Positions 40,465-58,187 of a stretch of DNA of 64,000 nt are shown here, piece by piece. Position numbers and translations under genes: made by a program. A model generated the notes under the pieces. The model was not told the DNA's origin. It saw only the letters and a program-made list of their open reading frames with translations, and did no database searches. Every line of letters begins with the position of its first letter. Position 1 is the stretch's first letter. Where the stretch lies: the IMG/VR virus record IMGVR_UViG_3300037010_001227, positions 149,190-213,189 of that record, one strand, 5' to 3'.

Positions 40465-40492
40465 CGATAATTACTAAGGACGGTAATTATCG
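40465..40492 (+). promoter_or_regulatory. Hairpin over the translation start of the SF2 helicase
   Basis: CGATAATTAC-taaggacg-GTAATTATCG; loop holds AAGGA, the right arm ends on the G of the GTG start. Confidence 0.5.
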
Positions 40493-41961
40493 TGAAAGCA
40501 ACCAAGTATTCTAATTATTGGATTCAGATGGAATTTGAATCCGAAGCTGAAAGAGAAGCCTTAGAACGAGCGACCTCCTTTTCTATTCCAGGTTCTCAAT
40601 TCTCTGCTTCTTATACAGCAGGCTGTTGGGATGGTAAGAAACGATTTCTTACTGCTGCCAACAAACTTCCAATGGGGCTTTTTAAGAGTCTCTTTCCTAC
40701 TCATAGTTTGGTTTATAATACAAACCCGGATTATAGCTTCAATGACCTATCATTTTTTAGAATGAATCCACAATTTGCTGGGCGAAAGTATCAACTTGAA
40801 GCTATAAATACTATTTTTACCGAAAAACGACTTATTATTGCAGCAGTTGTAGGAGCAGGTAAAACTCTTATAGCTGCTGCAACCATCCTGAAGCATTTGG
40901 AAACTTTCCCGAAAGGGAAAGTTTTATTTGTAGTCTATGACAAAAACATTCTAAAACAAACTGCCGATAAGTTCACGGAATACGGTATTCCATATACCGT
41001 GTTTGGTGGTGGCACTAAAGATCTAACTGGTGATGTAGTAATTGCAACTATTCAGACTTTGAATAATCTCAAAAATCCAACAAAGTCATTAGCTGCTTTT
41101 ACTATGTGTTTTTCTGATGAAGCTCATCACTCTAAAGCAAAAACCTCCAAAGATATTTTCTCACGACTTAAGGGTTGTGAATACTATATTGGGTTAACTG
41201 GAACTCCTCCAAAACAAGGAACTTTAGACTATGCTGAGTTAGTTTGCACATTAGGACCAGTTCGATATGAATACGGATTTCAGACAGCTACTACTGCGGG
41301 TAATATTGCTCCTGTTAAGTGTTTCTTCCTTAGAACACCTTTCAGTTTCGATACAGCTGGTAAGACTGTGAACAGAAAGAATTATCAAACTATCTGGGAG
41401 AACGGTATACGGGATAGTGAAATAAGAAACAAGACAATAGCATCTGTTGTTGCTACTATTAATACGTTGTTAAAAACTCCTACATTAATTATGGTAGACA
41501 GAACGGAACATGGTTGTAATATCGGTGAACAGATAAAACAATTCCAAAACATACGTCACCTAGAAATGTATGGTGAAGATTCAATAGTAGTTAGAGAGGC
41601 TAAACGAGAATTTCTAATGAATAATGATATTGACATCTTAATCAGCACCTTAAACAAAGAGGGGGTCGACTTCGCTATATCGCCTGTGGTAGCATTTAAT
41701 GCTGCTGGTAGAAAAAGTTTCGTGAGTCAGATTCAATTCTTGGGAAGAATAGTTAGAAAGAATGAGGATTTTAAATCATTTCGAGTTTACTATGATTTCC
41801 TTGATATTGCACATCCTAAGCTCAAAGAACATTCAGAAGAAAGACTCCAGGCTTGCAGAGATACTGGATCGTCAGTAGTTATTTGTGAAAGTATTAATGA
41901 GCTATTAGCCAAAACTATTGAATACTATAAAGAGTGTGGTTTAAAGGCACCAACGTTTTAA
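40492..41961 (+). CDS. Superfamily 2 DEAH helicase (UvsW-like)
   Basis: VGAGKT; SDEAHH; GLTGT; EGVD; QFLGRIVR. Confidence 0.9.
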   Translation: MKATKYSNYWIQMEFESEAEREALERATSFSIPGSQFSASYTAGCWDGKKRFLTAANKLPMGLFKSLFPTHSLVYNTNPDYSFNDLSFFRMNPQFAGRKYQLEAINTIFTEKRLIIAAVVGAGKTLIAAATILKHLETFPKGKVLFVVYDKNILKQTADKFTEYGIPYTVFGGGTKDLTGDVVIATIQTLNNLKNPTKSLAAFTMCFSDEAHHSKAKTSKDIFSRLKGCEYYIGLTGTPPKQGTLDYAELVCTLGPVRYEYGFQTATTAGNIAPVKCFFLRTPFSFDTAGKTVNRKNYQTIWENGIRDSEIRNKTIASVVATINTLLKTPTLIMVDRTEHGCNIGEQIKQFQNIRHLEMYGEDSIVVREAKREFLMNNDIDILISTLNKEGVDFAISPVVAFNAAGRKSFVSQIQFLGRIVRKNEDFKSFRVYYDFLDIAHPKLKEHSEERLQACRDTGSSVVICESINELLAKTIEYYKECGLKAPTF

Positions 41962-43331
41962 TTGGCTGTAGTGGGAGAATGGAAAAACAAACAATACAAT
42001 TACCCTTTAACAAGAAATTTCAGGCTGGATTAATTGTAGCAATGATTAAGGATTACGATTTCTATCGTAATATCGCTGATGACTTGCTACCAAGTTATTT
42101 AGATGCAGGACAAGCTCATATCAAGCTATTAAAGATTGTAAAGAGCAAAGCATCTTTATACAAGAAGCCTTTAACTATTGACATTATCAGAAATTCGCTG
42201 ATTGCCTTAGAAAAAGAGGGAGTATTTACTGAACCTGAAATCGCTGGCATTAATGCAGTGATTGATACTGGTTTAGGTTTAACTTTATCTGAATCAGCAT
42301 ATGTTAAACGTGAAGCATTTGAGTTTCTAAAGAAACAGGTAGTAGCTAAAGCAGTAAGCGAATCTATTGTTTATTTAGAAGAAAACAAATTAGATGAAGT
42401 CTATACGGCTATTACCGAAGCCTATAAAAAGACTTATGGTATTGGCGAGAACATAGGATATGATTACAAGAATTCTTCTATTTCTGATAGGTATTCTGAA
42501 CCACCAAGAAAAGGTATTTGGTCTTCTGGCTTTGCTAAGTTAGATCAATATATTGATGGTGGTTTTGCTTCTAGTGAGGCTTATACAGTAATTAGTCCTA
42601 CTGGTCGTGGTAAGACAGCCTTACTATGTAATTTTGGTGTAACAGCACTAACACAGAAAAAGAAATGTCTGTTCATTACACTTGAAATGCGAGAAGGTCA
42701 GATTGCACAAAGACAAGACTCAATTCTTTGTGGCTTTAGCGCAACTGAAATTGCAAACAATAGAGAATACCAAATGATTTTGGATCAGCAAATTCAGAAC
42801 AAAATCACAGGTGAGAACTTTATTAAGGGTTTCAACCGGGGTTCTTTAAGTATGGGAGCATTTAGAACATACTTAGATAGGTTCTGTAATGATATGTGGA
42901 AACCAGATGTTCTCATTTTTGATTGGTTAGGTTGCGTAAAATTGACTGGTGGAAAAGATGCCAAGAAACACGAACAGTTAGCAGAAATTGCTGACGATTT
43001 TATTAACCTAACAAGAGATTATGATTTAACTGGTATTTCTGCACATCAGAGTAATAGAAGTGCAGTATCTCAAGATGTGTTTGCTTATGATGTAGTTTCT
43101 GAATCATTCGCATCCTTGTTTGGTATGGATTTAGTGTTAGGTCTTGGTGCTACAAATGAAGCCAAAGATGCTGGTAAAAGAACACTCAGTATTCTTAAAT
43201 CTCGTATGGGTCCAGATTCAGTTTACACTAAGTTGATGGGTGATTTACCTGGTAAACCTTTAACTTTTAGGTTCAAAGAAAGTCTAATTGATGACGATGA
43301 AGAGAAAGAACTTCTTGAGGAGCAGCAATAA
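41934..43331 (+). CDS. dnaB: DnaB-like replicative helicase (likely start ATG 41979)
   Basis: SPTGRGKT; FITLEM; IFDW; AHQSNR; LKSRMG. Confidence 0.88.
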   Translation: MWFKGTNVLIGCSGRMEKQTIQLPFNKKFQAGLIVAMIKDYDFYRNIADDLLPSYLDAGQAHIKLLKIVKSKASLYKKPLTIDIIRNSLIALEKEGVFTEPEIAGINAVIDTGLGLTLSESAYVKREAFEFLKKQVVAKAVSESIVYLEENKLDEVYTAITEAYKKTYGIGENIGYDYKNSSISDRYSEPPRKGIWSSGFAKLDQYIDGGFASSEAYTVISPTGRGKTALLCNFGVTALTQKKKCLFITLEMREGQIAQRQDSILCGFSATEIANNREYQMILDQQIQNKITGENFIKGFNRGSLSMGAFRTYLDRFCNDMWKPDVLIFDWLGCVKLTGGKDAKKHEQLAEIADDFINLTRDYDLTGISAHQSNRSAVSQDVFAYDVVSESFASLFGMDLVLGLGATNEAKDAGKRTLSILKSRMGPDSVYTKLMGDLPGKPLTFRFKESLIDDDEEKELLEEQQ

Positions 43332-43624
43332 TGAAACGTGGTGATATTGTTGTATATACCAGTAAAGACAATGAATTTGGTGATTGGCAAGAACTTCAAA
43401 TTGCTTTTAGCGATACAGAAGTTATAAATATTTTTGGTGAGGTAGGTAGCACTCAGATGTTACCTGGAGAATACGAACAGTCTATAGTCACTATTTATAC
43501 TAAGCTTGATGCAGAATGGCAGAAGTTTTATAACCAGTTTTGTGAAGAAGCAGCTGATTGGAAGCAACAGGTATTAACTGATATTAATGTAACTGAACAG
43601 TTTATCAAAGAACTGGGGCAGTAG
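43331..43624 (+). CDS. Hypothetical protein
   Basis: TAATG coupling. Confidence 0.7.
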   Translation: MKRGDIVVYTSKDNEFGDWQELQIAFSDTEVINIFGEVGSTQMLPGEYEQSIVTIYTKLDAEWQKFYNQFCEEAADWKQQVLTDINVTEQFIKELGQ

Positions 43625-43965
43625 TGGAAGACGTTAAGCATGACCTCCTTAGTATTGAATACACAGAACTCGACAGCGGACTTCCTGCTATTTTAGTGAA
43701 TGGAGAGATTCCATTTGTAGTAACAAGTCTAATGTTTGTAAATAGTTTTGTGACATTTGCTAATAGTGATGTATTAATGTTCCGATTAAATAATCTTTCT
43801 GGAAATAAATTATCCTTCACTATATTGGCGGATTTAGGAGAAGCATCAATTTTAGAACTAAAATATGATAATGTTTTAGTAGGGAATGTGATGCTATTGG
43901 AACTCTTGGATATTATGTATACAATCCAAGCTACATTAAAAACTTTAAAAGAACAGTCTCTATAG
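43624..43965 (+). CDS. Hypothetical protein
   Basis: TAGTG coupling. Confidence 0.7.
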   Translation: MEDVKHDLLSIEYTELDSGLPAILVNGEIPFVVTSLMFVNSFVTFANSDVLMFRLNNLSGNKLSFTILADLGEASILELKYDNVLVGNVMLLELLDIMYTIQATLKTLKEQSL

Positions 43966-45834
43966 ATGTCAAAAATACCGGTAATTTCAGTTTTAATTGT
44001 ATGTAAGATTACTGAAGACCAAGCAACAAATAAGATAAAAACTCTTCATGAGTATTTACCAACTGGAACTTGCTTATGTAATACCTTCACACTGTATACA
44101 ACAGAAATACAAGATGTTGTAGCATTCATTGAAGCAAATCCAGAAAAGTTAGATTTAATAATTCAATATGGCTTAGGAAATGACCTCTTATGGGAATCCG
44201 ATAAGTTTAAGGGTATTCCAACAGTATCAAATAATAATTCTTATGAAGAGCTATTTGGTGCTGACCACATAATGAGTGGTGAGTTATTTCCAAAAATCAA
44301 GAAGGTATACACTGGAATAGATGATTATAAGTCACTACCAGAAGGTCTTCATATTGCAAAAACCAAAGAAGATTTGAAATATATCACAGATAAATGTCTA
44401 GCTGAAGCATTTGGTGCTGACACTGAAACAAACTTCTTAAATCCATTTCTGGAAGATCCAAAACCAGAAATGGTCTGTTTCTCTGTGGCTTGGTTGAGTA
44501 ATGAAGATGAAGGTTGGTGTATTCCAACAAACCAAAAACTAATTGATTCTGGTGAATGTGAATACACAGTAGAAGAAGCAATAAGAGCAGCAGAGATAGT
44601 TTTCTTTGAAACAGAACAAGATCAGTATTGGCAGAACTTTCACTATGACGCTCTAGTTCTTTGGGAACTTTTCGGTGGTAGAAAGCCGAAAAATTTTGCC
44701 GCTTGTACAATGTTGCTTTTGAACTTGTATCATAAAGCTATGAAACCATCTTCGTTAGATAAAAACGTTCAGATGGTTGGATTACCAGCATATAAAAATG
44801 CAGCTAAAGATTGGATTGCTGAACAACCTAAACGAAAGAAAGGACAAGATCCTTATACTTTTGCAGATGTTCCTTTAGAAATCATTGGACCGTATGCTGC
44901 ATTAGATGCTTTGGCAGTAGTAAGAATTGTTAACTTCTTAAAAAAGAACTTACCCAACAAACAATGGGCATTCTACTATACTGTTATGCATCCAGTTCTT
45001 TTAAGTTCTCTTGATCTATGTATCCAAGGATATGAAATTTCTAGAGACCGATATATGTATTCTAAATTGTCTGTTGAAGAACAGATTTTAGAAGTATTCA
45101 AACAGACTATTGATGTTGTCAAACCAGAGATTCCAGAGCGGTTTAACATCAATAGTTCAAAGCAGTTAGCAACTTTAATGTATGATAAACTAAACCTCCC
45201 TGTGTTAGCAAAAACAGACGGTGGAGATCCTGCTACTGGTAGTAAAGTATTGGATGATTTGATTTTATTTCATCCTTTCATCTTCTATCTTAGTAAGTTT
45301 AAGAAGTTGATGAAGCTTTATACATCATATGTTTTAGGTTACGAAAACGTATTAGGCCCAGGTTCTAGACACGTTAAGACTAATAGCAGATTCATCTTTA
45401 ATGCTCAGTTGAAACAAATCAATAGAACAGCTAGACTTTCATCTACTAATATGTTTGGGTACAAGAAGACCACCAAAAAAGGTGGCAGCATTCTTACACT
45501 TCCTGGCACTGGGTCAATGGTAAAACATTATTTTGCACCAAGAGAGGTAGTTGCTGTCGAAAATGAATTGTATTCTGAGATTTTAGAAGCTCTTAAACAA
45601 TCCAACGAGGAAGAATATACAAAAGTTATAGCAGCTTTTGAGCTGGATATTACAAAGACAGTTAAGCCGCCTAAAGAAGTAAAAGAAAAGAAACCACGGG
45701 TCACGAAGAAGAAGCAGTTGTTAGCTGCACAACTACAGGCCGCGCAATTGTCAAATCCAACGTTGCTTAGTGAACTTGAGGAAGAAGATGAAAGTAATGA
45801 TTCTGTAGACTCTGATTTACCGTGGAATGAATGA
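43966..45834 (+). CDS. polA: Family A DNA polymerase, N-terminal part (3'-5' exonuclease, thumb, start of palm)
   Basis: ExoI ADTET; ExoII QNFHYD; ExoIII YAALDA; FNINSSKQLA; KLMKLYTSY; RTARLSSTN; lacks motifs A-C. Confidence 0.9.
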   Translation: MSKIPVISVLIVCKITEDQATNKIKTLHEYLPTGTCLCNTFTLYTTEIQDVVAFIEANPEKLDLIIQYGLGNDLLWESDKFKGIPTVSNNNSYEELFGADHIMSGELFPKIKKVYTGIDDYKSLPEGLHIAKTKEDLKYITDKCLAEAFGADTETNFLNPFLEDPKPEMVCFSVAWLSNEDEGWCIPTNQKLIDSGECEYTVEEAIRAAEIVFFETEQDQYWQNFHYDALVLWELFGGRKPKNFAACTMLLLNLYHKAMKPSSLDKNVQMVGLPAYKNAAKDWIAEQPKRKKGQDPYTFADVPLEIIGPYAALDALAVVRIVNFLKKNLPNKQWAFYYTVMHPVLLSSLDLCIQGYEISRDRYMYSKLSVEEQILEVFKQTIDVVKPEIPERFNINSSKQLATLMYDKLNLPVLAKTDGGDPATGSKVLDDLILFHPFIFYLSKFKKLMKLYTSYVLGYENVLGPGSRHVKTNSRFIFNAQLKQINRTARLSSTNMFGYKKTTKKGGSILTLPGTGSMVKHYFAPREVVAVENELYSEILEALKQSNEEEYTKVIAAFELDITKTVKPPKEVKEKKPRVTKKKQLLAAQLQAAQLSNPTLLSELEEEDESNDSVDSDLPWNE

Positions 45835-46568
45835 TAACCGATAATCCTTTTTTCAGTGACAACCATTGCAATGCTTATATAAGTCAGTTAATAACTAAAC
45901 AAACACATGAATCAGCACTAGAACTTGTAAACATAGATAGTTTCAGGTATTCTGCTTTATATAAAGACCTTGGAATGAATCAGTCAGCAATGACAACTGG
46001 TAATAAATTAAACCAAGCTACTTATGTAACAAGTAATTATTCAACAATAGTTGATGGACATATCTTTAGAGGTAAACACTCTAGTCCTTCAGGGCCACCT
46101 GTTCAGAGCGGAATGTGTAAGGTTTCTTTATATTTGATTCCTGAAGATTCTGCATATGTTGGTGGTTACAGCGCAATTAGTATTGATTGTTTCATAGAAG
46201 TATACAAACTTCTTGGGGCAAGAAGTGTCTGCACAAATGATTCTTTATATTGGTTAAAGGGAAATACTTCTAAATTAGGATTACAGTTAATACTTTCAGC
46301 TGTAAAATGTGAACATGGTGACTATCACGTTGAAACCTATGATTTCATGACAGCTGATTCTAACAAGTATTTTTTAATTAAACTCTTACATATGTTTTTA
46401 GCTTCTTACTCATATATTAACAATCTGTATGACACAAGTGATCTAATATGTAAAGAGTTTTCTGATTTGATTTATAATAATATTGTATTACCTTGGTCAC
46501 CCAATGTTAGTAAGACAATCAGTGACGAAATCAAATATTCCTGGCTTAAGCATCACCTTATATTGTAA
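45831..46568 (+). CDS. Hypothetical protein
   Basis: ATGA overlap with the polA-N stop. Confidence 0.7.
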   Translation: MITDNPFFSDNHCNAYISQLITKQTHESALELVNIDSFRYSALYKDLGMNQSAMTTGNKLNQATYVTSNYSTIVDGHIFRGKHSSPSGPPVQSGMCKVSLYLIPEDSAYVGGYSAISIDCFIEVYKLLGARSVCTNDSLYWLKGNTSKLGLQLILSAVKCEHGDYHVETYDFMTADSNKYFLIKLLHMFLASYSYINNLYDTSDLICKEFSDLIYNNIVLPWSPNVSKTISDEIKYSWLKHHLIL

Positions 46569-46574
46569 TTTTAT

Positions 46575-47315
46575 ATATAACATGCGGAATATATAAAGTT
46601 ACAAATACTATTAATAATCATTTTTACATTGGTTCATCAAGTAATATTCAGTATAGATGATCAAAGTATAAACATGATTTAAAAAACAAAATAAATATTT
46701 TAATAATCATCTTCAAAATGCTTGGAATAACTATACAGAACCTGTATTTGAGTTTTTATTTTAGAAACCTGTAAAAATCTAAATTAGTTGAGCGGGAACA
46801 ATATTTTTGGACTTATGCTATGATAATCATAATATACATTATAACACTAATAAAGTTTCTACTTTAAAGTAATGTTGATTATAAGCATACAACAAATAAC
46901 AAATTCTAAACAAAAAATATCTACTGCCAAGAAAGGGAAGCCTGGTAAAAATACCGTCAGCAGAAACTAAACAAAAAATAGCAGCCTTACTCATTGGTCA
47001 TTTTGTATCGGAAGCAACTAGACAAAAATTGACTGCTAATAGACTTAATATAAAACATACAGAAGAAACTAAAATATTAAAATGTCTATTAGTCATAAAA
47101 CACGTCAGACGTAAAATATCTGCTTCTAGACAAAATATATCAAAAGGAATTAAACAAAAATGAGTGATAGTCATAAAACATTTCTGATAATACAATGCTA
47201 AAAGTTATGACATATCTCCAAAATAATGAAATACCTATAGTACAAGCAGCAAACCAGTTTAATATACCAAAAAAAAGTATTTTGTATCGCAGAACAAGAG
47301 AATATACAAAGTTAA
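46575..47315 (+). pseudogene. GIY-YIG/NUMOD3 homing endonuclease, fragmented
   Basis: TCGIYKVTNTINNHFYIGSS, EREQYF, ETKQKI-type repeats, many stops. Boundaries approximate. Confidence 0.8.
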
Positions 47316-47318
47316 TCC

Positions 47319-47936
47319 TTGACAACAATAACGCTATCTAAGAGTAATACTAAAATTGGGAATATTGCTAGTTTTTCTATACCCTCCAAAGTTAGATGCT
47401 TGGGCAAAACACTCTGGTGTGAAAAACATTGTTATGCGTATAAATTAGAAGTTAGATTTCCAAATGTACTATCAAGTTATAAACGTAACTTTGAAGCTAC
47501 AAAAGATATGTTCTTTGTAGATAATATGGAAATAGCAATTAAAAAATTACCAAAGAAAATAAAGATTATCCGTATTCATGTATCGGGTGATTTTTATTCT
47601 CAAGATTATATTTATGACTGGACTAATATAATTGCTAATCATCCTGATTATCAGTTTTATACTTACACCAAAGCTTGGAGGATTACAGAACTTCTTCCAG
47701 CTCTAGAACTTATGAAATCTTTACCAAATCTTACTATGTTTGCATCTACTGATATAGATACGGTAGCAAATGGTGAGAAAGTTCCACAAGGTTGGAGAGA
47801 AGCTTATTCTGGAGATATTCAACCAAAAGGTTCTGTATTTTGTCCAAATCAAGCTGGTAAGATAGACACATGCGAACATTGTAAACTTTGTGTCAAACCA
47901 AAACTAACATCGACAATTTATTTCAAAACACACTAG
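47319..47936 (+). CDS. Gp88-like Cys-rich protein (radical-SAM-like Fe-S fold suspected)
   Basis: C...WCEKHCYA; IRIHVSGDF; YTYTK; CP...C..CKLC. Confidence 0.7.
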   Translation: MTTITLSKSNTKIGNIASFSIPSKVRCLGKTLWCEKHCYAYKLEVRFPNVLSSYKRNFEATKDMFFVDNMEIAIKKLPKKIKIIRIHVSGDFYSQDYIYDWTNIIANHPDYQFYTYTKAWRITELLPALELMKSLPNLTMFASTDIDTVANGEKVPQGWREAYSGDIQPKGSVFCPNQAGKIDTCEHCKLCVKPKLTSTIYFKTH

Positions 47937-47941
47937 GAATC

Positions 47942-48337
47942 ATGAAAATCGTAAAATTTAAGGATATGCATAGTGGTGGTAGAAATAAAGAATCTTATGC
48001 GTATATCTATATTGAAGCAATGGGAGAAGACACTGCAAGTTTAATATTTTATAATCGGTTTGGTCATAATCCAAATAGAGTCACTTGCACCTGTTGTGGA
48101 GAAGATTATAGTATTGATGAACACAATGATTTATTATTAGCAACTGCATATGAACGTGGATGTAAATATGATGAAACCTTATGTGCTTATGTAGAATGTC
48201 CAGATGTAGATAAGTCTTGGAGACCTTACGAATCTTTATCAAAATATCTAAACCGAGAAGATGTTCTTTTTATTTGTGATGAGGATGTAAAATCAGAAGA
48301 ACGTTGTGGAGAACTTCCTAAACAGGGTTATGTCTGA
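47942..48337 (+). CDS. Hypothetical protein with CxCC motif (track start 47888)
   Basis: AGGA SD before ATG 47942; DMHSGG...RVTCTCCGEDY. Confidence 0.7.
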   Translation: MKIVKFKDMHSGGRNKESYAYIYIEAMGEDTASLIFYNRFGHNPNRVTCTCCGEDYSIDEHNDLLLATAYERGCKYDETLCAYVECPDVDKSWRPYESLSKYLNREDVLFICDEDVKSEERCGELPKQGYV

Positions 48338-48348
48338 GTGGACTAAAG

Positions 48349-48735
48349 ATGAATAAAAAATACCAAGTAGTTCTGATGCAGGGACATTTACTCTGTAGCA
48401 CGCTAGAAAATAGGCTATCCCTTCCTCTTGATAATAGTTCATTTAATATTATTAAACTCAATAAAAATGAACTTAAAGAGTATATGAAATCTGCAGTCAT
48501 TTTTTCTGGAACACGACCCCTACATAATAAGTCTTGGACTATTGTGTATAGGTATGATTTGCCACACTACCATCTTGATGGTGTTCTACCAAAACTTCCA
48601 GAAGATTACGTCTGGATTCCTGTAGAGAGATTTAGAGATGGCTCTTATGACTCAAAGGAAACTCAAAATCAATTTCTTCCATCTCATTTAACCAAACTTA
48701 AGCGAATGCTTAATGATATTGAGGCATTAAAATAA
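48349..48735 (+). CDS. Hypothetical protein
   Basis: ORF; TAATG coupling to cca. Confidence 0.7.
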   Translation: MNKKYQVVLMQGHLLCSTLENRLSLPLDNSSFNIIKLNKNELKEYMKSAVIFSGTRPLHNKSWTIVYRYDLPHYHLDGVLPKLPEDYVWIPVERFRDGSYDSKETQNQFLPSHLTKLKRMLNDIEALK

Positions 48736-50018
48736 TGCTTAACATAGATATCCCAATGGATTTGGTAGAGATACTCAAATCCTTTGAAGCTCAAATTCCT
48801 GGAACAGAGTTTAGGTATGTTGGTGGTTGTATTAGAGATACCATTCTTGGGATTAAGCCTAAAGATTGGGATATCGTTACTGATGCTTCTCCTGAACAGC
48901 TTGAGTCTCTTGGATTGTCCAAGGTAGGGAAAGACTTTCCAGTTTTTCTCTACCAACATCCTACTTATGGGCAAATAGAAATAGCTTGTTGTAGGACAGA
49001 GAGAAAAGTAGGAACAGGCCATAACGGTTTTGAAGTTAAAGTCTGTAAATCTTTTGAAGAGGATTTGAAACGACGAGACTTGACAATCAATGCTGTTGCT
49101 TGGCACCATAAGAATGGTGGAACTATTTACTCTCCTGTTCCTCTTGAACTCTTGGAGTATGATTTTGAGAATCATGTTCTCTGCCATGTGTCTCCAGCTT
49201 TTGCTGAAGATCCTTTGAGAGTTTTGAGAGTAGCAAGGTTCCAAGCTAAACTGTCTTGTCAAAATTCTACTATTCAATACTTTTTCAGTGTTGATACGAC
49301 TACTTTGGCATTGATGGCAAGTTTGAAAGATGAGTTAAACAAGGAACCAGTAGACAGAGTAAAGAAAGAGTTTGAGTCTGTAATGCTCGGTTCTAATCCA
49401 AAGAATATCTATCTTTTCTTCGCAACTCTTTATAATAGTAGATGTGGAGACTGGTATAGAGAGATTTGTACTACAATGTCCACACCTACTTCTAAGTTCT
49501 ATATCTTTCCAGAGACTTGTAAACAAAGAGTAGATGCTTTGTATCTTCATTTTGCTGAGGCAGCATATAATTTGGCTGGACCAATAGATACAAAACATAT
49601 GATTGCAGAAGCTAGTTGCAAGAGACTCAAACTTGGTTTGGTTTCTGAAATGAAAACTTATCTAGACTTGAGAACACGAATCTCAGAATTTTCACTTGGT
49701 ATAGCAAACAACAGTTTCTTTTGTTCTCCTCAATTAGCTAAAATGGTAATGCTTTGTAAACAGTTGAATCGCGGTAAGTTTCCGGCTCATATTTACTTTG
49801 ATATGATCCGAGAAATGGCCGCTCCTAGATGGTTTATGAAGAGTAATCATATAAACTATCAAGAGCAGGCTCTTGACATGTTTGAGTATATGTATTTGGC
49901 TTTTACTAATCTCAAGTTTAACAATACACAAACTCCACAAGAGATATTTGCTATCCAAACAGATTGTGTTACTGAGTTTGTTGAGATTTACTGTAAGAAA
50001 ACTATAAAGGATATATGA
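48735..50018 (+). CDS. cca: tRNA nucleotidyltransferase (CCA-adding, class II)
   Basis: VGGCIRD...KDWD; EDLKRRDLTINA; FAEDPLRVLRVARF. Confidence 0.9.
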   Translation: MLNIDIPMDLVEILKSFEAQIPGTEFRYVGGCIRDTILGIKPKDWDIVTDASPEQLESLGLSKVGKDFPVFLYQHPTYGQIEIACCRTERKVGTGHNGFEVKVCKSFEEDLKRRDLTINAVAWHHKNGGTIYSPVPLELLEYDFENHVLCHVSPAFAEDPLRVLRVARFQAKLSCQNSTIQYFFSVDTTTLALMASLKDELNKEPVDRVKKEFESVMLGSNPKNIYLFFATLYNSRCGDWYREICTTMSTPTSKFYIFPETCKQRVDALYLHFAEAAYNLAGPIDTKHMIAEASCKRLKLGLVSEMKTYLDLRTRISEFSLGIANNSFFCSPQLAKMVMLCKQLNRGKFPAHIYFDMIREMAAPRWFMKSNHINYQEQALDMFEYMYLAFTNLKFNNTQTPQEIFAIQTDCVTEFVEIYCKKTIKDI

Positions 50019-50228
50019 GAGATGAACAAATATATATATAAGACTTTACATGCAGGAACTGAACAACGTCTGAATGTGTAAAATAGTATACATCACGATC
50101 AACGTTTTGTAGGTTTGTTATACGTTGTTATACTTGTGATAGAAAGTTTACAAGCAGCTGGAGATATTATAGCTTGCTCTTATAAAATGGACTCGCAAAC
50201 CCTATGTGTTCAGAACTAAAGGTATCAG

Positions 50229-50582
50229 ATGAGTAAATATAAAATCTTACTTATACCTGAAGGTAGATGTTTATCAGAAGGTGAAACTACTGTATATGTT
50301 ATTTTAGAGCAAATTAATAATTTAACTAAACTTGCAATGATGTATTATAAAGAATATTTATTTGAGCAACAGCAGGATCCCTTTAGTAACCATGCCAAGA
50401 ATATCATCAAAGACTTAGATGTTGTGTTACAAAAAAGTAGCCTATTACGAGCCTCCTTATGTAAGGAAGCTGTATTTATATCTTACAAAAAAGCTCAACA
50501 GGGATTACTATTTTATTTAGACTTCAATTCTCCAGAAGATAAAAAATATCACTTAACAGAGTTCGAGTTTATTAAGGAATAA
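50229..50582 (+). CDS. Small hypothetical protein, probable member of the 6.2-7.2 kb paralog family
   Basis: YKILLIPEG...TEFEFIKE. Confidence 0.65.
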   Translation: MSKYKILLIPEGRCLSEGETTVYVILEQINNLTKLAMMYYKEYLFEQQQDPFSNHAKNIIKDLDVVLQKSSLLRASLCKEAVFISYKKAQQGLLFYLDFNSPEDKKYHLTEFEFIKE

Positions 50583-50583
50583 T

Positions 50584-50952
50584 ATGGCTAAGAAACCATT
50601 AAAAGTTCCCTTTGATCCAATCTCAGGAGAACTTCTTCCTGATGGATATATCCCACACCAAATTTTTGATGACTCTATTAAGGCTTATATAGCAAATCCA
50701 TCCAGTGGAATGGAGATAGATTATAGAGATAATTTTGTTTTTCATACTAAAATGAAAATCGAAAAGATGACGTCTACTTATAGCGGAAGTCCTAAAATAA
50801 TCCTGTCTGAAGTAGATTCAGGTTTCAGATTTAAAATGTATAGCAACGAGTTTAACGACGTAGTTGATAGAATTCAAGAAGGTGGTATTCTTGATTTAGA
50901 TTGGACTTTTTGTAGTAAGGGTGGTAATATTGCTGTCAAAGCTGTTTTATGA
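50584..50952 (+). CDS. Hypothetical protein
   Basis: AAGGA SD. Confidence 0.7.
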   Translation: MAKKPLKVPFDPISGELLPDGYIPHQIFDDSIKAYIANPSSGMEIDYRDNFVFHTKMKIEKMTSTYSGSPKIILSEVDSGFRFKMYSNEFNDVVDRIQEGGILDLDWTFCSKGGNIAVKAVL

Positions 50953-51238
50953 GCGAAAGAAAATCTATCTCAAAGAAGCAAAAAGTTAAGATTTATAAAG
51001 CTAACAATAGACTTCAGACTATGTGGATGAAGTTGTCAACTAGAGTAAGAAAAAACAAAAAGAAAGATATAACACCATTGAGGGATGAATAAGTATACTA
51101 GGAATTATTGCACTTAGTTTTTGCAACTTATCTGTATAGTTATTCAGCTATACAATATGAGTATAATAGAACTTTAAATATATGGTTAGTATTGTTAAAT
51201 CTAACTTTATTTATAATTAGTCTTTATCAATTTCTCAA

Positions 51239-51778
51239 ATGATTTTACAACCACATAAAACGGCTATTAAGAGAAATAAGCCATCACGAATTGCTAAATA
51301 TATTGTTGAAACTATTATTCCTGAAACAGGTTTTAAATCAATACTAGATTATGGATGTGGAAAAGGTGATGATTGCAATTATTATTTTTCAAATGATTTA
51401 CTTACTAGTGGTTATGACCCCTATTACATTCCGCATCTGAATAATGAATTTAGATATGACATAGTTGCATTAACCTATGTGTTAAATGTAATAGATAATG
51501 AACAAGATAGAATATTAACATTTAAAAAAGCATTAGACAAAGTGAAACCTGGTGGTATTTTTGTTGTTACTGTAAGATCAGACAAATCTATCTTTTATCA
51601 GGCTTCTACAAAATCTTGGAAGTTTCATAATGATGGTTTTATTACATCAGAATCTAAAGGAACCTTTCAAAAAGGATTCTCAATACAAGATTTAATGTCA
51701 TATGCTAATTACTTTAACTTTACAAATGTAGAATCCATATTTGACGACGATTGTGTAAGTATCTTACTTAGGTGTTAA
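51239..51778 (+). CDS. Class I SAM-dependent methyltransferase
   Basis: HKTAIKR; ILDYGCGKG; GYDPY; YVLNVI; GTFQK. Confidence 0.85.
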   Translation: MILQPHKTAIKRNKPSRIAKYIVETIIPETGFKSILDYGCGKGDDCNYYFSNDLLTSGYDPYYIPHLNNEFRYDIVALTYVLNVIDNEQDRILTFKKALDKVKPGGIFVVTVRSDKSIFYQASTKSWKFHNDGFITSESKGTFQKGFSIQDLMSYANYFNFTNVESIFDDDCVSILLRC

Positions 51779-51780
51779 TT

Positions 51781-52303
51781 ATGAAGGTTTTAGTTGCATG
51801 TGAATTTCAGGTAGAGTAAGGAAGCAAAAGGTCACGATATTCTAAGTTATAATTTACTTCTAATTAAAATTCCTTGACCACATTATCAAGGTGATATTAA
51901 AGATATCATTACTGGTGGTTGAGATATAATGATTGCGCATCCACCTTGCACTTATCTGACTGTTTCTGGTGCAGCATGGTTTTAAAAAGAGCAAGCAGAA
52001 GCATTAGAATTTGTTAAACTTCTTATGAATGCACCAATTGAAAAAACTTGTGTTGAAAAATCCAGTCAGTATTATAAATACTAAACTAAAAACCCAACAC
52101 AAATTATTCAACCTTAGTAAATTGGTCATCCTGAATTAAAACGAACTTATCTCTGGTTAACAAACTTAGAACCATTAGTTCCAACTAATACTGTTGTTTG
52201 TAGAATATGTAACATTCTTAAAATGTCTCCACTAGATAGTTAGAAAGATAGTAGCAAAATTTACCACGGCATTGCAGATGCTATGACAAGTCAACGTGGT
52301 TAA
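51781..52303 (+). pseudogene. Phage-type C5 cytosine methyltransferase-like gene, multiply disrupted
   Basis: MKVLVACEF/SGRVREA, IAHPPCTYLTVSGAAWF, GIADAM; frameshifts and in-frame TGA codons. Confidence 0.75.
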
Positions 52304-52603
52304 AGTAAACCGACTTAACTGAAGATGAGCTTGAAGTTCATATTGGTAAAGTTGAGTTTATAGAACAACAAATAGAAAACACATACAACAACAGTGAGAA
52401 AGGGTTTGGAGAGAACAGGCCAGAAATCTTGGTAACTATGACTCTATTCTGAACAAGTTAAAAGAGATAAGAATAGATTGGTAGAAGAAAGACAAAACAA
52501 TTGGTTTAATAAACCCTAAGGAAAAGGCTAAGAAAACCATTCAATACTATCTTTCAAATAATTCTCAATATCAAAACTGTGAGTTGAAATCATAAAGGCT
52601 AAC

Positions 52604-53048
52604 ATAACAATAGGATTTTATCTAGGTAGTTTCAATCCACTTCATTTTAGTCATTAAGGTGTTATTGAAAAGGTATTAAAACTATTTGATATTACAGTTG
52701 TTGCACACGGTGTAAATCTAGAAAAGCATCAAGCTTTAAATGCTGAACAACCTATCAGAATTGCCATAAGTTTAAACTTAATGTTTGATTATAGAGTTCA
52801 TCTGATTAGGTTTTCTGGTCTTTGATTTATGGTTGATGCAATAAAAGATTACGAAACTGATGGAAGGTGGAAAATTATTACAGTAATTCAGTAATTATAA
52901 TGATTTACAATATGAAATGAACCAACAGTATTAGAATAAAGATTTAGGTCTTGGAATCCCTGTTGTATATTTTATTACAGATCAAAACCTGGCTCATATT
53001 AGCAGTTCAGTAATTAGAACAATAGAGCAACTCAAAAAGAAGGTATAG
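52604..53048 (+). pseudogene. coaD: Phosphopantetheine adenylyltransferase (CoaD)-like, disrupted
   Basis: IGFYLGSFNPLHFSH*GVIEKVLKLFD and AHISSSVIR; start mutated, internal stops. Confidence 0.7.
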
Positions 53049-54376
53049 TGATAACGGCGGAATTAGAAAAACTACATCAATCGAATTTCAAGTCTCTAAC
53101 AAAGGCTGGAGTTGACTGGTATAATATTGTAAAAAACAATCCTAAGTTATTAGAAAAATATTTATGCTATTTAAAACTAAAGTCTGAATATATCATGGTA
53201 AACATTGACTTTAGTCAGTTAGAATTATATGTTCTGGCATCTTTAAGTGGCGATCCAGATATGATTGCAACTGTGAACTCTGGACGAGACTTACATGATG
53301 TGAATACTGAAAAGGTGTATGGCATTAGCAAGTCTGAACGTGAAGCTGCTCATAAGCTGGCAGAAGCCAGGTTTAAAGAAAATCCCACAGAAGAGAACAA
53401 TAAGTTAGTTAAATCAGCAGAGATGCTATTAGAAGATTTCAAGACTAAACGTAAGTTTATTAAGGCTCTTAGTTTCTCCCTAACTTACGGAGCAGGAGCT
53501 AATAAGATTGCGAGAGACTTGAAGATTACAATGGCAGAAGCTTTAAAACTAATCAATGACTTCTACAACACATATCCAAAGGTAAAAGAATGGCAGGAAA
53601 AGACCTTCTTATTCGCCATTCGTAATGGATATGTAGAAACTCCTTTTGGTAGACAACGAGGAACTCCACGTATTCATAATAGAATGGATGCTTATGAAGC
53701 TCTGGTTTTAGAGAAGCCAGCAGTAATCAGTAAGTTAAAGAAAGCTGGAGAGTATTGGTCTTTACGAGAAGAACAAAAAGTTTGTAAAAATACTCCAGTT
53801 CAGTCTACTGCAACTGATATGTGTTCTTTATCTTTCTGTATTATTAGAAAAGAGTTCAGAAAGAATCTACTTCGTAGAGCTAATCCATTTTTCTGGGTTC
53901 ATGATGCTAACGTATTTTCCTCTCATATTGATACAGCAGTAGATAATATCAAATATGTTGTAGAAATCATGGAGAACAATGTTAAGTATAAAGGCGATCC
54001 AGTCAACTATCGTGCTGAAGCAGAAGTTGGTTATAATTACGAATACGTAGCTGGTATCAAACGTTCTGAGATTTACAGTGATGCTTTTACTAAAGAACTA
54101 ATTCTGAAGAAATTAGAAGAATCTTTAGTAGCTGATCTTAAAAAGAAGTTCAAGTTGGTTATCAAATCTACTGGCACTTCTATGGATAAAATTAAAGACT
54201 ATGTAGATGCACAACGAGAAGCTAAGGGCCAGTATTTCAACGATCTTGTGGAATCTCTTGGATTAGGTGTTTCTACTCCAGATAATTACATGGCATTAAT
54301 GAACCAAATGACTTTATCAGAATATATAGAAGCTGAAGAGACACGATTAGGTGAAGATGAGGAAGAAGATGAATAA
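53048..54376 (+). CDS. polA: Family A DNA polymerase, C-terminal part (motifs A, B, C)
   Basis: DFSQLELYVLA; RKFIKALSFSLTYG; ETPFGRQR; KNTPVQSTATD; WVHDA. Confidence 0.92.
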   Translation: MITAELEKLHQSNFKSLTKAGVDWYNIVKNNPKLLEKYLCYLKLKSEYIMVNIDFSQLELYVLASLSGDPDMIATVNSGRDLHDVNTEKVYGISKSEREAAHKLAEARFKENPTEENNKLVKSAEMLLEDFKTKRKFIKALSFSLTYGAGANKIARDLKITMAEALKLINDFYNTYPKVKEWQEKTFLFAIRNGYVETPFGRQRGTPRIHNRMDAYEALVLEKPAVISKLKKAGEYWSLREEQKVCKNTPVQSTATDMCSLSFCIIRKEFRKNLLRRANPFFWVHDANVFSSHIDTAVDNIKYVVEIMENNVKYKGDPVNYRAEAEVGYNYEYVAGIKRSEIYSDAFTKELILKKLEESLVADLKKKFKLVIKSTGTSMDKIKDYVDAQREAKGQYFNDLVESLGLGVSTPDNYMALMNQMTLSEYIEAEETRLGEDEEEDE

Positions 54377-54770
54377 AAGTTCTTATTAAAAGTATGGATT
54401 ATGCAGATGAATTTGGTATACATGGTTTATTGTATTAGACAAGGAAAATTTAATTATTATGACTCTAGGACTAAAGAATATTTCGACTTTAATAATGGAG
54501 CCGAAATTGATTATAGTTTTAGGACTAATGAATCTGTTGTTTTAGATTCTTAGTATAAGTGGGAATCTGCATTAATTGTAACAGATATTTCTGGTACTTA
54601 GGACGAGGTTCTTTAAAATTATTTGGTAAATGGGGCTTTGGACTAACATTTATTTTAGAACTTTCAGAACAGTTAGATTTTTTGGAAGATACTTAAGAAA
54701 TGAGTGGATGATAGTGGGCTATAGTTATTATTTTATTTTGTATTCGATAATTGTAAGTTAAAGGACTAAT

Positions 54771-55193
54771 ATGAATAATGAACCAAAACAAGTTATTGTT
54801 GTAAGAAAAGACTTACATATGAGGTCTGGAAAAATTGGAAGCCAGTGTGCCCACGCCTCTATGAAAGTTATTTTAGATGCTGGTATATATGAAACTAGAA
54901 ATAGATATAATAATGAACATCCAGAAAAAATAACATCATTTTCCATTGATTTAAGCGAGGTTCTTAAGCAATGGTTAGAAGGAAAATTTACTAAAATTGT
55001 AGTTAGTGTTGATTCAGAAGCAGAATTGCTTGAACTTCAAAAACAAGCAAAAGAAGCTGGTATTTTGAATGCTCTTATTACTGATTGTGGACTTACAGAG
55101 TTCCATAATGTTCCAACTAATACATGCCTAGCAATTGGCCCTGATTGGCCAGATAAAATTAACAACCTAACTGGACACTTAAAACTACTATAA
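54771..55193 (+). CDS. pth2: Peptidyl-tRNA hydrolase, Pth2 type
   Basis: KQVIVVRKDL.M..GK...QCAHA; F.KIVV; DCGLTE; TCLAIGP. Confidence 0.93.
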   Translation: MNNEPKQVIVVRKDLHMRSGKIGSQCAHASMKVILDAGIYETRNRYNNEHPEKITSFSIDLSEVLKQWLEGKFTKIVVSVDSEAELLELQKQAKEAGILNALITDCGLTEFHNVPTNTCLAIGPDWPDKINNLTGHLKLL

Positions 55194-57578: not shown

Positions 57579-58187
57579 ATGTCCAAACCAATCATTGGTG
57601 TAGATTTGGATGATGTAATCTACCCATTTACTACAGAGTTTATGAAGTTTGTCAACAAACAATTAGGTGTAGACAAGACTATTAAAAACTGTCTTGTTTA
57701 TAGCCTAGCTGTAACATATGGGATTCCAGAACAGCAGATTTATGATTTTATTGCCTTATTTATGAATACCAGAGCAGCAAAGAATGCTCTACCAATTCCT
57801 GGAGCAAGAACTTCACTAAAAACACTAAAAGAACATTACGATGTTCATATTGTTACAGCCAGACCAGAAACATTAAATAAGGATACACGAAACTGGCTTG
57901 ATAAAGATTTTAAAGATCTTTATTCAGATATTCATTATTGTAGTTTTTACAGTTTGGGTGATAAAAAGGAAGTAAAACTATCAAAAACAGATGTTTGTAA
58001 ACAACTAAACGCTTTTTGTCTTGTTGATGATAATGTTTGGAATGCCACCGATTTCCATAGAGCTGGATTTTTAGGCGTTTTATTTGGAAACTATCCTTGG
58101 CAAAGTTCTGCTGAACGTGATATAGTAAAAGCATCTAACTGGGCTGAAGTTAAGCAAATATTGGTTGGTAAGGAACATTTAGTATAG
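57579..58187 (+). CDS. 5'(3')-deoxyribonucleotidase-like HAD
   Basis: GVDLDDVI; IVTAR; K..VC; LVDDN. Confidence 0.85.
   Translation: MSKPIIGVDLDDVIYPFTTEFMKFVNKQLGVDKTIKNCLVYSLAVTYGIPEQQIYDFIALFMNTRAAKNALPIPGARTSLKTLKEHYDVHIVTARPETLNKDTRNWLDKDFKDLYSDIHYCSFYSLGDKKEVKLSKTDVCKQLNAFCLVDDNVWNATDFHRAGFLGVLFGNYPWQSSAERDIVKASNWAEVKQILVGKEHLV

Follow-up and report, generated by a model that had tools for sequence, protein, structure and literature searches.

Two polymerase genes and the position of the cut

For this phage's own DNA the analysis covered the window, a stretch of 64 kb on a contig that has another 149 kb. It contains two genes, here called PolA N and PolA C, which together carry the parts of a family A DNA polymerase, and both open reading frames lie exactly where the original prediction had placed them (Table 1). 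Genes for UvsW-like and DnaB-like helicases just upstream place the polymerase genes in a replication module.

Table 1. Features of the locus (nucleotide positions refer to the window)
Feature	Nucleotides	Strand	Residues	Remarks
UvsW-like SF2 helicase	40492..41961	+		upstream context
DnaB-like helicase	41934..43331	+		just upstream of the polymerase genes
PolA N-subunit gene	43966..45834	+	622 aa
N-subunit, N-terminal domain without assignment			1-125
N-subunit, 3'-5' exonuclease			129-329	ExoI D152-T153-E154; ExoII N224/D228; ExoIII Y310/D314
N-subunit, thumb and first palm strand	up to 45540		up to 525	ends in VKHYFAP
N-subunit, 97-aa extension	45541..45831			invariant E532-N533; Lys-rich, then acidic tail
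Gene X	45831..46568	+	245 aa	ATG overlaps N-subunit stop (ATGA)
Decayed homing-endonuclease remnant	46600..47320	+		low GC; 21-31-nt direct repeats encoding NUMOD3-like 'K.S...G' fragments; short HTH-like ORF
GP88-family gene	47319..47936	+		cargo
Two small ORFs	47888..48735	+	149 and 128 aa	cargo, common to L118
CCA-adding/poly(A) polymerase-family nucleotidyltransferase	48735..50018	+		cargo
Two small ORFs	50229..50952	+	117 and 122 aa	cargo, common to L118
Methyltransf_23 methyltransferase	51239..51778	+		cargo
Three pseudogenes	51824..53042	+		each intact in closest relative L118
PolA C-subunit gene	53048..54376	+	442 aa	GTG start with own GAAGG ribosome-binding site
C-subunit, N-terminal extension	53048..53185		1-46	modelled as four helices
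C-subunit, motif A	53207		D54
C-subunit, motif B	53450..53491		R135-G148	includes F143
C-subunit, motif C	53900..53905		H285-D286
C-subunit, conserved C-terminal helical domain and acidic tail	54041..54373		332-431 (domain)

The N gene product comprises the 3'-5' exonuclease, the thumb and the first palm strand of PolA. Pfam assigned DNA_pol_A_exo1 to aa 129-329 and positions 22-125 of the DNA_pol_A profile to aa 385-495, and alignment to the PDB structures of Bst, Klenow and Taq polymerases ends at RLSST (aa 494), after which the protein continues to ...GSMVKHYFAP (aa 525) and then for 97 residues more. The earlier reading of the gene is confirmed, with VKHYFAP ending at 45540 and the extra residues with their acidic tail after it. 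The extension begins with Arg-Glu and is partly low-complexity, with E532, N533 and P568 conserved, and the exonuclease motifs are invariant in an alignment of 25 related N-pieces.

The C gene product supplies motif A, the fingers (motif B) and motif C. Its residues 47-95 align to Taq 603-651, D54 corresponding to the motif A residue D610, and residues 135-215 align to Taq 659-739, with R135, K139, F143 and Y147 matching R659, K663, F667 and Y671, so that F143 is the 762-equivalent Phe. The predicted order of novel N-terminal residues followed by motifs A, B and C is thus confirmed, the extension being aa 1-46. Motif C reads VHDA, and the third carboxylate of the motif (HDE) is replaced by Ser or Ala throughout the clade; because HDS also occurs in SPO1 and in MEP401, this is no argument for inactivity. 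Among 29 C-pieces, no variation occurs at D54, E59, R135, K139, F143, Y147, G148, H285 or D286, and F14, L17, G21 and W24 are conserved in the extension. In four related lineages the Asp codon of motif A is the site of an RF2-type +1 frameshift cassette. In an AF2 model of the C-piece (pLDDT 87, pTM 0.77), the extension forms four helices (pLDDT 74-93) running into the motif A strand, and Foldseek matched the model to KlenTaq, Klenow and Bst over ~285 columns (E ~1e-15).

The cut lies inside the palm, as had been proposed, in the hairpin immediately before the catalytic Asp: the strands on its two sides are ~3 residues apart in Taq and are carried here by different genes. The domains and motifs of the two products are complementary, none being missing and none duplicated, and, with the cut inside the palm, neither product has a complete polymerase domain.

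Conservation and selection across related phages

Among 5.8 billion proteins, ~54 metagenomic clusters were of the N type, with 561-626 aa and 44-57% identity, and ~79 were of the C type, with 47-87% identity. Wherever a related locus had enough flanking sequence, as in at least 16 distinct genomes, N was upstream of C and on the same strand, the intervening gap ranging from 575 nt to ~8.5 kb. The N-piece search admitted hits of up to 1088 aa, and over the range from E 1e-133 to 1e-13 it yielded no relative with an unsplit gene. The comparison with related phages proposed earlier therefore shows the same cut recurring, with no contiguous polA among close relatives, and points to an old, selected enzyme of two, possibly three, pieces rather than a broken gene or an assembly error. 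As judged from these loci, the cut appears to be ancestral to a large clade of uncultured phages with genomes of roughly 210-245 kb.

In a comparison with L118, which is 87% identical, the C gene as a whole has a dN/dS of 0.07; taken part by part, the values are 0.08 in the N-terminal extension, 0.05 in the core and 0.12 in the C-terminal domain. The clade-wide cut, catalytic residues invariant in both halves, purifying selection that extends to the added N-terminal residues and the lack of an unsplit close relative together uphold the original view that one family A polymerase is divided between the two genes.

The N-piece could in principle work by itself, as an exonuclease for proofreading or repair that has a DNA-binding thumb, and the C-piece as some other nucleotidyltransferase. 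Replication would then fall to another enzyme, for which the contig's other 149 kb would leave room. Stand-alone exonuclease and polymerase genes are known in T7-like cyanophage clade B (PMC12695635). In those S-TIP37-like phages the cut falls naturally at the exonuclease/polymerase domain boundary, and the family A replicase is itself encoded by two genes whose products presumably assemble, as is likely here (PMC12695635). In the window clade, by contrast, the cut runs through the palm sheet, so that N keeps the thumb and one palm strand while C receives the catalytic strands; the two genes occur together in every genome examined, directly behind the helicase genes in the window, and both proteins bear clade-specific conserved extensions exactly at the cut. 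We consider independent functions quite unlikely.

Gene X and the DNA between the halves

Gene X, directly after N, was overlooked in the original inventory of the gap; the intact genes named there are confirmed (Pfam: GP88, 5e-30; PolyA_pol/CCA head, 2e-19; Methyltransf_23, 7e-9). An ORF of 171-248 aa occupies this position in every related locus examined. X evolves fast, and searches returned no family assignment for it. One tentative extension of the two-subunit explanation, compatible with it, is a three-component holoenzyme in which X would be an obligatory subunit that bridges or clamps the halves, or else serves processivity or has an accessory role. Its constant position, its translational coupling to N, the stop/start overlaps or 1-3-nt spacers that bound it in minimal loci, and the way X types follow polymerase subclades are all consistent with this idea. 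The Xa family (26 sequences) has a very confident AF2 model (pLDDT 91.9, pTM 0.90), implying a real, folded, selected protein, and only 17 members were found among 1.84 billion representatives, all within this size range. On the other hand, homology among the groups Xa, Xb and Xw (the window's own) could not be demonstrated (BLAST found nothing, and hhalign gave E 0.013-0.24 over a colinear C-terminal stretch only), the ESM Atlas prediction for the window's X is poor (pLDDT 0.28), no fold or family match points to DNA or polymerase binding, and no structural neighbor of the Xa model was found. The position could also mark a class of selfish or moron genes replacing itself at the site, and we regard an obligatory role as possible but doubtful.

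The remainder of the 7.2-kb spacing consists of lineage-specific cargo, a decayed homing endonuclease and three pseudogenes. Against their L118 counterparts, the first pseudogene, C5-methyltransferase-like by its PPCT/ENPV motif only and without a Pfam match, has seven in-frame stops; the second, a relic of a 111-aa gene, has one; and the third, CTP_transf_like (coaD-like), has three and a frame change. At 52241, where the window has one of the pseudogene stops (TAG), another sample reads TGG. Two of the relics first proposed therefore stand, the C5-methyltransferase by motif, whereas the endonuclease debris is NUMOD3-like and only putatively of the GIY-YIG type. The debris is missing from a 243-kb relative, in which X adjoins GP88, and the GP88-family gene of relatives lies within the gap or just outside it. 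The origin of the split by endonuclease insertion that was first suggested would be conjectural, although homing endonuclease genes sit in the gap of several relatives. In several, LAGLIDADG endonuclease genes are directly upstream of C. No repeats flanking the gap were found. Gaps of only 575-680 nt in relatives, and cargo shared by close relatives of the window, bear out the suggestion of later gene accretion; the 7.2-kb spacing is a trait of this lineage and not of the split system.

The pseudogenes and decayed endonuclease show that the region tolerates decay, and could be taken to mean that the polymerase genes are themselves relics of a disrupted polA, or that their separation is an assembly artefact. 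An independent 27.9-kb contig, however, covers 47401..53400 without a difference and without joints, across the C start, and three further samples cover parts of this interval, so misassembly was not borne out there; from the N stop to 47400, assembly support comes only from the gene order of the 243-kb relative. Two related assemblies corroborate the gene order, and many samples and pipelines gave independent assemblies with the same architecture. With the low dN/dS and catalytic residues invariant across 25-29 diverse relatives, relics or an artefact are the least probable explanation, extremely so.

The halves might instead be joined into one chain, whether through an intron spliced in cis or in trans, through a split intein or through ribosomal bypassing. 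Group I introns are common in phage polA, and in SPO1-like Bacillus phages one interrupts gp31 in the same short, highly conserved palm stretch, ~25 codons upstream of the window's cut, within RLSSxxPNxQN, with endonuclease gene 31.2 inside the interruption. With 97 and 46 aa, the extensions bear a superficial resemblance in size to the two parts of a split intein, and LAGLIDADG genes such as those next to C are usually borne by introns or inteins. The SPO1 exons, though, are spliced at the RNA level (a joined CDS is annotated, with a partial Intron_gpI match in Rfam), whereas the window has separate starts and stops, translated conserved extensions and no group I/II intron signal in 45300..53400 at E<=5, in a search mode that gives E 4e-4 for the SPO1 polA intron. 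Pfam found no Hint/intein domain, and the junctions lack intein ends: the N extension does not start with Cys/Ser, and the C extension terminates in ...KSEYIMVNI-D rather than His-Asn followed by Cys/Ser/Thr. Both extensions are conserved as protein, the C extension under purifying selection and with helices contiguous with the palm strand; up to 15 independently conserved protein genes lie in the gap, and C has a ribosome-binding site and start of its own. Among the sequencing runs listed with this sequence, none was from RNA. The original prediction of neither intein ends nor an intron core is thus sustained, and joining is very unlikely. The sequence evidence supports a natural, non-intron, non-intein split of PolA, whose two translated genes would have to cooperate.

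A two-subunit model and its precedents

We estimate at roughly 0.75 the probability that the two genes encode a single replicative family A DNA polymerase in two pieces, each of them indispensable. Proofreading exonuclease, thumb and outer palm strand would come from the N-subunit; the fingers and the two catalytic aspartates, those of motifs A and C, would come from the C-subunit. Because the division into two chains separates the DNA-binding thumb from the palm sheet, neither half should polymerise alone. Translated separately, the halves would associate non-covalently, probably via the clade-specific extensions flanking the cut, candidate contacts being the conserved 'V...EN.LY..IL..L' segment that follows the last strand of N and the four-helix module preceding the motif A strand. 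The ancestral layout was most likely a tight N-X-C operon. Homing endonucleases and cargo genes have since settled between X and C, and in the window's lineage this space has expanded to its present length and is now partly decaying.

The same structural site is cut in a PolA already published for MEP401/MEP402-type phages of OM43 (Methylophilales), which are related to Zobellviridae (PMC10580990; OP830906). MEP401 ORF13 carries the exonuclease and the N part of PF00476, ending ...GRLSSSSPNLQNFDGEIKTLFLSRYGE, and ORF15 begins MILNADAKALE... (motif A), placing the cut after the 'RRAF' strand and before that of motif A. The relationship between the two polymerases is no more than distant (E 9e-5 over 72 aa), so the cut probably arose independently. 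The MEP401-type genomes are 43-kb and podovirus-like; MEP401 has a single small ORF of 77 aa between the halves and lacks the extensions at the cut and the C-terminal domain, both of which the window clade has; the gap is never expanded in the published genomes. The system is known from its genes, and its authors left open whether it represents an intron or a split (PMC10580990).

Both PhiKZ and the T4-like phages with split gp43 have family B rather than family A enzymes, with another gene arrangement and no sequence relationship to the window's genes. In the chimallivirus PhiKZ, the DNAP-N and DNAP-C halves are stably associated, as shown by cryo-EM, whereas for the window's PolA we only infer assembly, and the accessory subunit Rhc boosts activity (PMC13648687). 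PhiKZ provides a working precedent for a two-polypeptide jumbo-phage replicase, including a possible third subunit.

Two polymerase genes and the position of the cut

In Pfam scans, the 622-aa product of the upstream gene (the N-piece) matches PF01612 at aa 129-329 (E 3.8e-5) and profile positions 22-125 of PF00476 at aa 385-495. Its alignment to Bst, Klenow and Taq ends at RLSST (aa 494), beyond which the sequence runs on to ...GSMVKHYFAP (aa 525), the counterpart of Taq ...IRRAFIA, and is followed by 97 more residues. The 442-aa C-piece aligns to Taq from aa 47 (Taq 603), with D54 in its motif A (IDFSQLELY) equivalent to the motif A Asp, Taq D610. Motif B residues R135, K139, F143 and Y147 are the counterparts of Taq R659, K663, F667 and Y671, F143 therefore being the 762-equivalent Phe, and motif C reads VHDA (H285-D286).

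The ExoI (D152-T153-E154), ExoII (N224...Y227-D228) and ExoIII (Y310...D314) residues are invariant or nearly so among 25 N-pieces, and D54, E59, R135, K139, F143, Y147, G148, H285 and D286 show no variation in 29 C-pieces. The third residue of motif C is Ala or Ser clade-wide, and Ser also in SPO1, a Bacillus phage with a polA group I intron, and in MEP401, an OM43 phage with a split PolA; therefore, the Glu of HDE is not conserved in these phage lineages. All family A motifs tested (ExoI-III and motifs A, B and C, with the catalytic Asp pair) are present across the two pieces. The single-polypeptide layout, which is usual for the family although not strictly defining, is absent: the two ORFs have a separate stop and start. 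In Taq, the strands carried here on two genes are only ~3 residues apart (FIAEEGWLLVALDYSQ), so that the cut lies in a hairpin inside the palm and not at a domain boundary. The Pfam matches, the alignments to Taq, Klenow and Bst and the motifs agree with the original prediction of a PolA in two genes, cut inside the palm between segments a few residues apart and carrying Phe at the 762-equivalent position of motif B.

A search of 5.8 billion proteins yielded ~79 C-type clusters (420-454 aa when full-length, 47-87% identity) and ~54 N-type ones (561-626 aa, 44-57% identity), often on the same contigs, among them contigs of 225-243 kb. The N-piece search admitted proteins of up to 1088 aa and had no matches with E values from 1e-133 to 1e-13, the value of bacterial Pol I; no unsplit close relative, that is, no contiguous polA of the kind that the original prediction proposed to look for in related phages, is therefore on record. 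Every related locus with enough upstream flank has the two genes on one strand, with N upstream of C. The clade-specific extensions flanking the cut are conserved as well: the N-side pattern 'P..V...EN.LY..IL..L....KP' includes invariant E532, N533 and P568 (25 N-pieces), and the C-side pattern 'KKL...SF.SL..LG.DW...V..NP.L...Y..YL..K' invariant F14, L17, G21 and W24 (29 C-pieces). Nei-Gojobori comparison of the C gene with that of the closest relative, L118 (87% identical), gave dN/dS of 0.07 for the whole gene, 0.08 for the N-terminal extension, 0.05 for the core and 0.12 for the C-terminal domain. The low dN/dS together with the conserved residues indicates that the N and C genes are functional and not relics. 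Judging from the sequences, the palm split is genuine, old and maintained by selection.

The window forms the final 64 kb of the 213,189-bp IMG/VR contig IMGVR_UViG_3300037010_001227. Its DNA was found in microbial-mat and sediment metagenomes, with no RNA run containing the C gene among those listed. Compared by megablast with 50,697 phage records, the region as a whole matched no cultured phage, and tblastn against phage records reached at most 31% identity.

Features of the window and of related metagenomic loci (L-handles)
Feature	Sequence	Position	Remark
UvsW-like and DnaB-like helicases	window	directly upstream of N gene	+ strand; polymerase genes within replication module
N gene	window	43966..45834	+ strand
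Gene X	window	45831..46568	ORF directly after N gene
Low-GC repeat region	window	46600..47320	probable dead homing endonuclease
ORF with minor C-terminal truncation	window	47888..48337	terminal TGA at 48335..48337
CCA-adding-type nucleotidyltransferase	window	48735..50018	
Three adjacent pseudogenes	window	51824..53042	PPCT/ENPV-motif methyltransferase-like; 111-aa gene; coaD-like cytidylyltransferase
C gene	window	53048..54376	+ strand
PTH2 peptidyl-tRNA hydrolase	window	54771..55193	downstream of polymerase genes
NT5C nucleotidase	window	57579..58187	downstream of polymerase genes
CoaBC-like genes (DFP plus Flavoprotein)	window	58411..60155	downstream of polymerase genes
Sigma factor	window		downstream of polymerase genes
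LAGLIDADG-type endonuclease gene	L012	2827-3639	directly upstream of C gene, slight overlap
LAGLIDADG-type endonuclease gene	L044	2502-3320	directly upstream of C gene, slight overlap
LAGLIDADG-type endonuclease gene	L122	3678-4490	directly upstream of C gene, slight overlap
LAGLIDADG-type endonuclease gene	L124	558-1364	directly upstream of C gene, slight overlap
LAGLIDADG-type endonuclease gene	L126	177-1136	directly upstream of C gene, slight overlap
Frameshift cassette	L041/L042	about 10127-10146	
Frameshift cassette	L124	about 1505-1524	
Frameshift cassette	L123	about 300-319	
Frameshift cassette	L126	about 1252-1271	

Expression signals of the halves and a putative frameshift cassette in relatives

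Rfam searches gave no match in the window at gathering thresholds and nothing intron-like in 45300..53400 at E<=5; the SPO1 polA intron, used as a control, was missed at the gathering threshold and matched Intron_gpI with E 4e-4 in the same permissive mode as used for the gap. Pfam scans found no Hint or intein family in either piece. The junction residues (...YFAP/REVV... and ...MVNI/DFSQ) are wrong for a Cys/Ser start and for a His-Asn plus Cys/Ser/Thr end, and the C extension is modelled by AF2 as helices, in contrast to the beta-rich Hint half expected of a split intein. The reported absence of a group I intron core and of intein ends is upheld by these searches. Misassembly of the gap, raised originally as a way in which the reading could fail, is not borne out for 47401..53400, where the contigs of four samples show no joints, and no direct repeats flanking the gap were found. 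The extensions are conserved as protein (dN/dS 0.08 for the C extension), unlike exons that join without extra coding sequence. The N stop overlaps the start of X (ATGA), and a GAAGG ribosome-binding site precedes the GTG start of the C gene by 5-6 nt. A scan of 43000..55000 was uninformative, with promoter-like sites at shuffled expectation and no convincing + strand terminator in the gap. As far as the sequence tells, no intron, intein or DNA excision brings the halves together, and we infer that splicing is unlikely.

In four related lineages (L041/L042, L123, L124 and L126), the reading frame of the C gene breaks off right at the codon of the motif A Asp, where the gene carries the cassette …UGGUGAAUCUUUGAC…. 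In all four, the 0 frame reads (I/L)-L-V-N-L-stop via ...YTG GTG AAT CTT TGA C, and the +1 frame, GAC TWY TCN CAG, encodes D(Y/F)SQLELY... and continues the conserved protein. The consensus for +1 frameshifting in prfB, which encodes RF2, is CTT_TGA_C with an upstream SD (PMC3711429), and the cassette has these features, with the CUU UGA C shift site in phase and an SD-like element ~3 nt upstream. The 15-mer TGGTGAATCTTTGAC is kept although upstream synonymous codons vary between lineages (ATC/ATT/CTA; TTG/CTG). The cassette lineages are scattered in a tree of 76 sequences, and the non-shifted members use varied codons, the window having GTA AAC ATT GAC without a shift. The cassette looks like a case of programmed +1 frameshifting in a phage polymerase gene, in which termination at TGA would release a 56-64-aa extension peptide alone. 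The cassette pattern was not found in IMG/VR contigs. One further candidate, C-piece P0074 of L122, was discarded, its truncation being a scaffold N-gap artefact. L124 and L126 have both the cassette and a LAGLIDADG gene ahead of the C gene; conceivably, the altered motif A DNA of the cassette lineages is connected with immunity of a homing site.

The space between the halves and gene X

The distance from N stop to C start is 7213 nt in the window, compared with 575 nt in L010, 590 nt in L007, 621 nt in L047, 656 nt in L043, 676 nt in L003, 1530 nt in L044, 1650 nt in L012, 2648 nt in L040, 3798 nt in L005, 3841 nt in L008, 4590 nt in L042, 5172 nt in L038 and about 8500 nt in a 243-kb ENA contig. 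On this last relative, the gene order is N, a 248-aa ORF, GP88, a Dam-type methyltransferase, NMNAT/NUDIX, a deoxyribosyltransferase, a CCA enzyme, Methyltransf_23, a cytidylyltransferase-like gene, small ORFs and finally C; L118 has GP88 through C in the same order as the window. Compared with L118, the three pseudogenes next to the C gene have 7, 1 and 3 stops in frame, many of which arose through TGG>TGA/TAG or AAA/CAA>TAA changes. Another sample has TGG in place of the TAG stop at 52241 (52242 A>G), and the decay is therefore recent and polymorphic. The C5-MTase and coaD relics first read in this stretch are thus confirmed as decayed, the former being methyltransferase-like by its motif. 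Elsewhere in the gap, the terminal TGA of the truncated ORF aligns to a Trp of the L118 orthologue, three codons before the end of the latter. With gaps in relatives starting from 575 nt and cargo common to the closest relatives, the comparison favors the later gene accretion originally proposed: by sequence comparison, the 7.2-kb spacing is a secondary, lineage-specific accretion that is now partly eroding.

Between X and GP88, the window contains a low-GC region with tandem 21-31-nt repeats encoding NUMOD3-like fragments and an HTH-like mini-ORF, which has no counterpart in the 243-kb relative; it resembles, and probably is, a dead homing endonuclease. LAGLIDADG or Endonuclease_7 genes occur in the gap of other relatives and, together with the remnant in the window, mark the space between the halves as a landing pad. 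The CCA-type, PTH2, NT5C and CoaBC-like genes, along with the decayed coaD-like gene, suggest a former phage-encoded coenzyme A pathway.

In all loci (the window, L003, L005, L007, L008, L010, L012, L038, L040, L042, L043, L044, L047, L049 and L122), the N gene is directly followed by X, a fast-evolving ORF of 171-248 aa, commonly with a stop/start overlap. It falls into the groups Xa (214-224 aa; nine sequences from eight distinct loci, with 17 representatives among 1.84 billion proteins), Xb (171-177 aa; five loci) and Xw, the type of the window (245-248 aa; only two close relatives found). Homology between the groups was not demonstrable by BLAST, hmmsearch or hhalign, the best hhalign alignments being colinear C-terminal stretches with E 0.013-0.24. 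Profile search of the 1.84 billion representatives recovered Xa-type members only, and the weakest match, P0208, is unlike the X of the window. The AF2 model of Xa (pLDDT 91.9, pTM 0.90) has no structural neighbor in PDB or BFVD by Foldseek (best E 0.09-0.15, TM <0.25). No X has a family match in Pfam or PHROGs, and the ESM Atlas gave no usable match. Derivation of X from polymerase sequence was considered and dropped, as hhalign against both polymerase alignments gave no signal. X may be a third subunit or, alternatively, a rapidly replaced passenger.

Proposed assembly and known split polymerases

The AF2 model of the C-piece, built from 29 sequences (pLDDT 87.2, pTM 0.77), aligns by Foldseek over ~285 columns to KlenTaq, Klenow and Bst with E ~1e-15. 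In this model, the C extension consists of four helices (aa 4-12, 15-19, 24-29 and 32-47; pLDDT 74-93) leading directly into the motif A strand, aa 48-55. Past the usual PolA C-terminus, an extra conserved helical domain (aa 349-435, pLDDT 65-76) is followed by a disordered acidic tail. An acidic tail also ends the N-piece of the window and is common to several relatives; in the T7 and T4 replisomes, acidic tails are typical protein-protein contacts. The helical domain and tail of the C-piece (aa 332-442; 54041..54376) are clade-specific and without a family match, and so is the N-terminal domain of the N-piece (aa 1-125; 43966..44340), which was originally read as alpha/beta.

A weak BLAST line against RP13 PolA had hinted that the N-side extension (VVAVENELYSEILEAL) is a degenerate copy of the strand and helix of motif A, as an origin by duplication and degeneration would leave behind. 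Profile-profile comparison with the C-piece alignment gave E 0.22, in the wrong region, and this reading was dropped. The RP13 PolA match to the C extension (query from aa 4) is the ordinary RLSS-to-motif-A stretch of an unsplit enzyme.

The two pieces, which are complementary in content, co-occur, are conserved and under selection, and have separate translation signals, would be translated separately and assemble into one polymerase. Proofreading, the thumb and the outer strand of the palm would come from N, the fingers and both catalytic Asp residues from C, and the interface would likely be formed by the clade-specific extensions at the cut. Of the two-subunit PolA originally proposed, the core stands on the clade-wide cut, the invariant residues and dN/dS; the binding of N to C, their stoichiometry and the roles of X and the acidic tails are what we infer. 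In the fullest reading, to which we give roughly one chance in four, the replicase would be a three-part machine of N, C and X with the helical extensions as the assembly interface, and an RF2-sensing +1 frameshift at the motif A Asp codon would act as a gate on C-subunit synthesis in some lineages, coupling polymerase output and the release of the free 56-64-aa extension peptide to the termination capacity of the host.

The OM43 phages MEP401 and MEP402 have been published as carrying PolA on two ORFs that a small unknown ORF separates (PMC10580990). In the MEP401 record, ORF13 ends ...IKTLFLSRYGE and ORF15 starts MILNADAKALE, which puts the cut at the same structural position as in the present clade. 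In both, the N gene encodes the exonuclease and the N part of PF00476 and the C gene encodes its C part, the cut separates the RRAF strand from the motif A strand, and at least one ORF lies between the two genes. MEP401 differs in having no extensions at the cut, and the C parts are only distantly related (29% identity over 72 aa, E 9e-5). Because of this precedent, the clade of the window counts as a new lineage, far larger and more elaborate, of a kind already known, although uncharacterised. In clade B of the T7-like cyanophages, the exonuclease is split from the polymerase at a domain boundary (PMC12695635), whereas here the cut lies within the palm. The family B polymerase of PhiKZ has been proven to consist of two chains and has an additional subunit (PMC13648687). 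The jumbo-phage survey of Iyer et al. describes a split Pol III alpha and split RNA polymerases, with no palm-split PolA in the passages retrieved (PMC7824862).

Gene annotation is affected, since pipelines label the halves 'hypothetical' or 'partial DNA polymerase', and PolA surveys of virioplankton that use the 762 position would pick up the C gene only. Family A polymerases are workhorses of molecular biology and nearly always single chains. An ancient, widely conserved cut in the palm would mean that the catalytic sheet can be built from two polypeptides, and helps to understand the tolerance of gene fission in an essential enzyme. The pair of extensions may do the joining, and could be of use for engineering split or conditionally assembled polymerases. 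The gap series from 575 nt to 8.5 kb, with its endonucleases, cargo and pseudogenes, illustrates cleanly how a cut within a gene can become a landing pad in the genome. The X gene and the RF2-type frameshift of the relatives are testable leads to new replisome biology and phage recoding.
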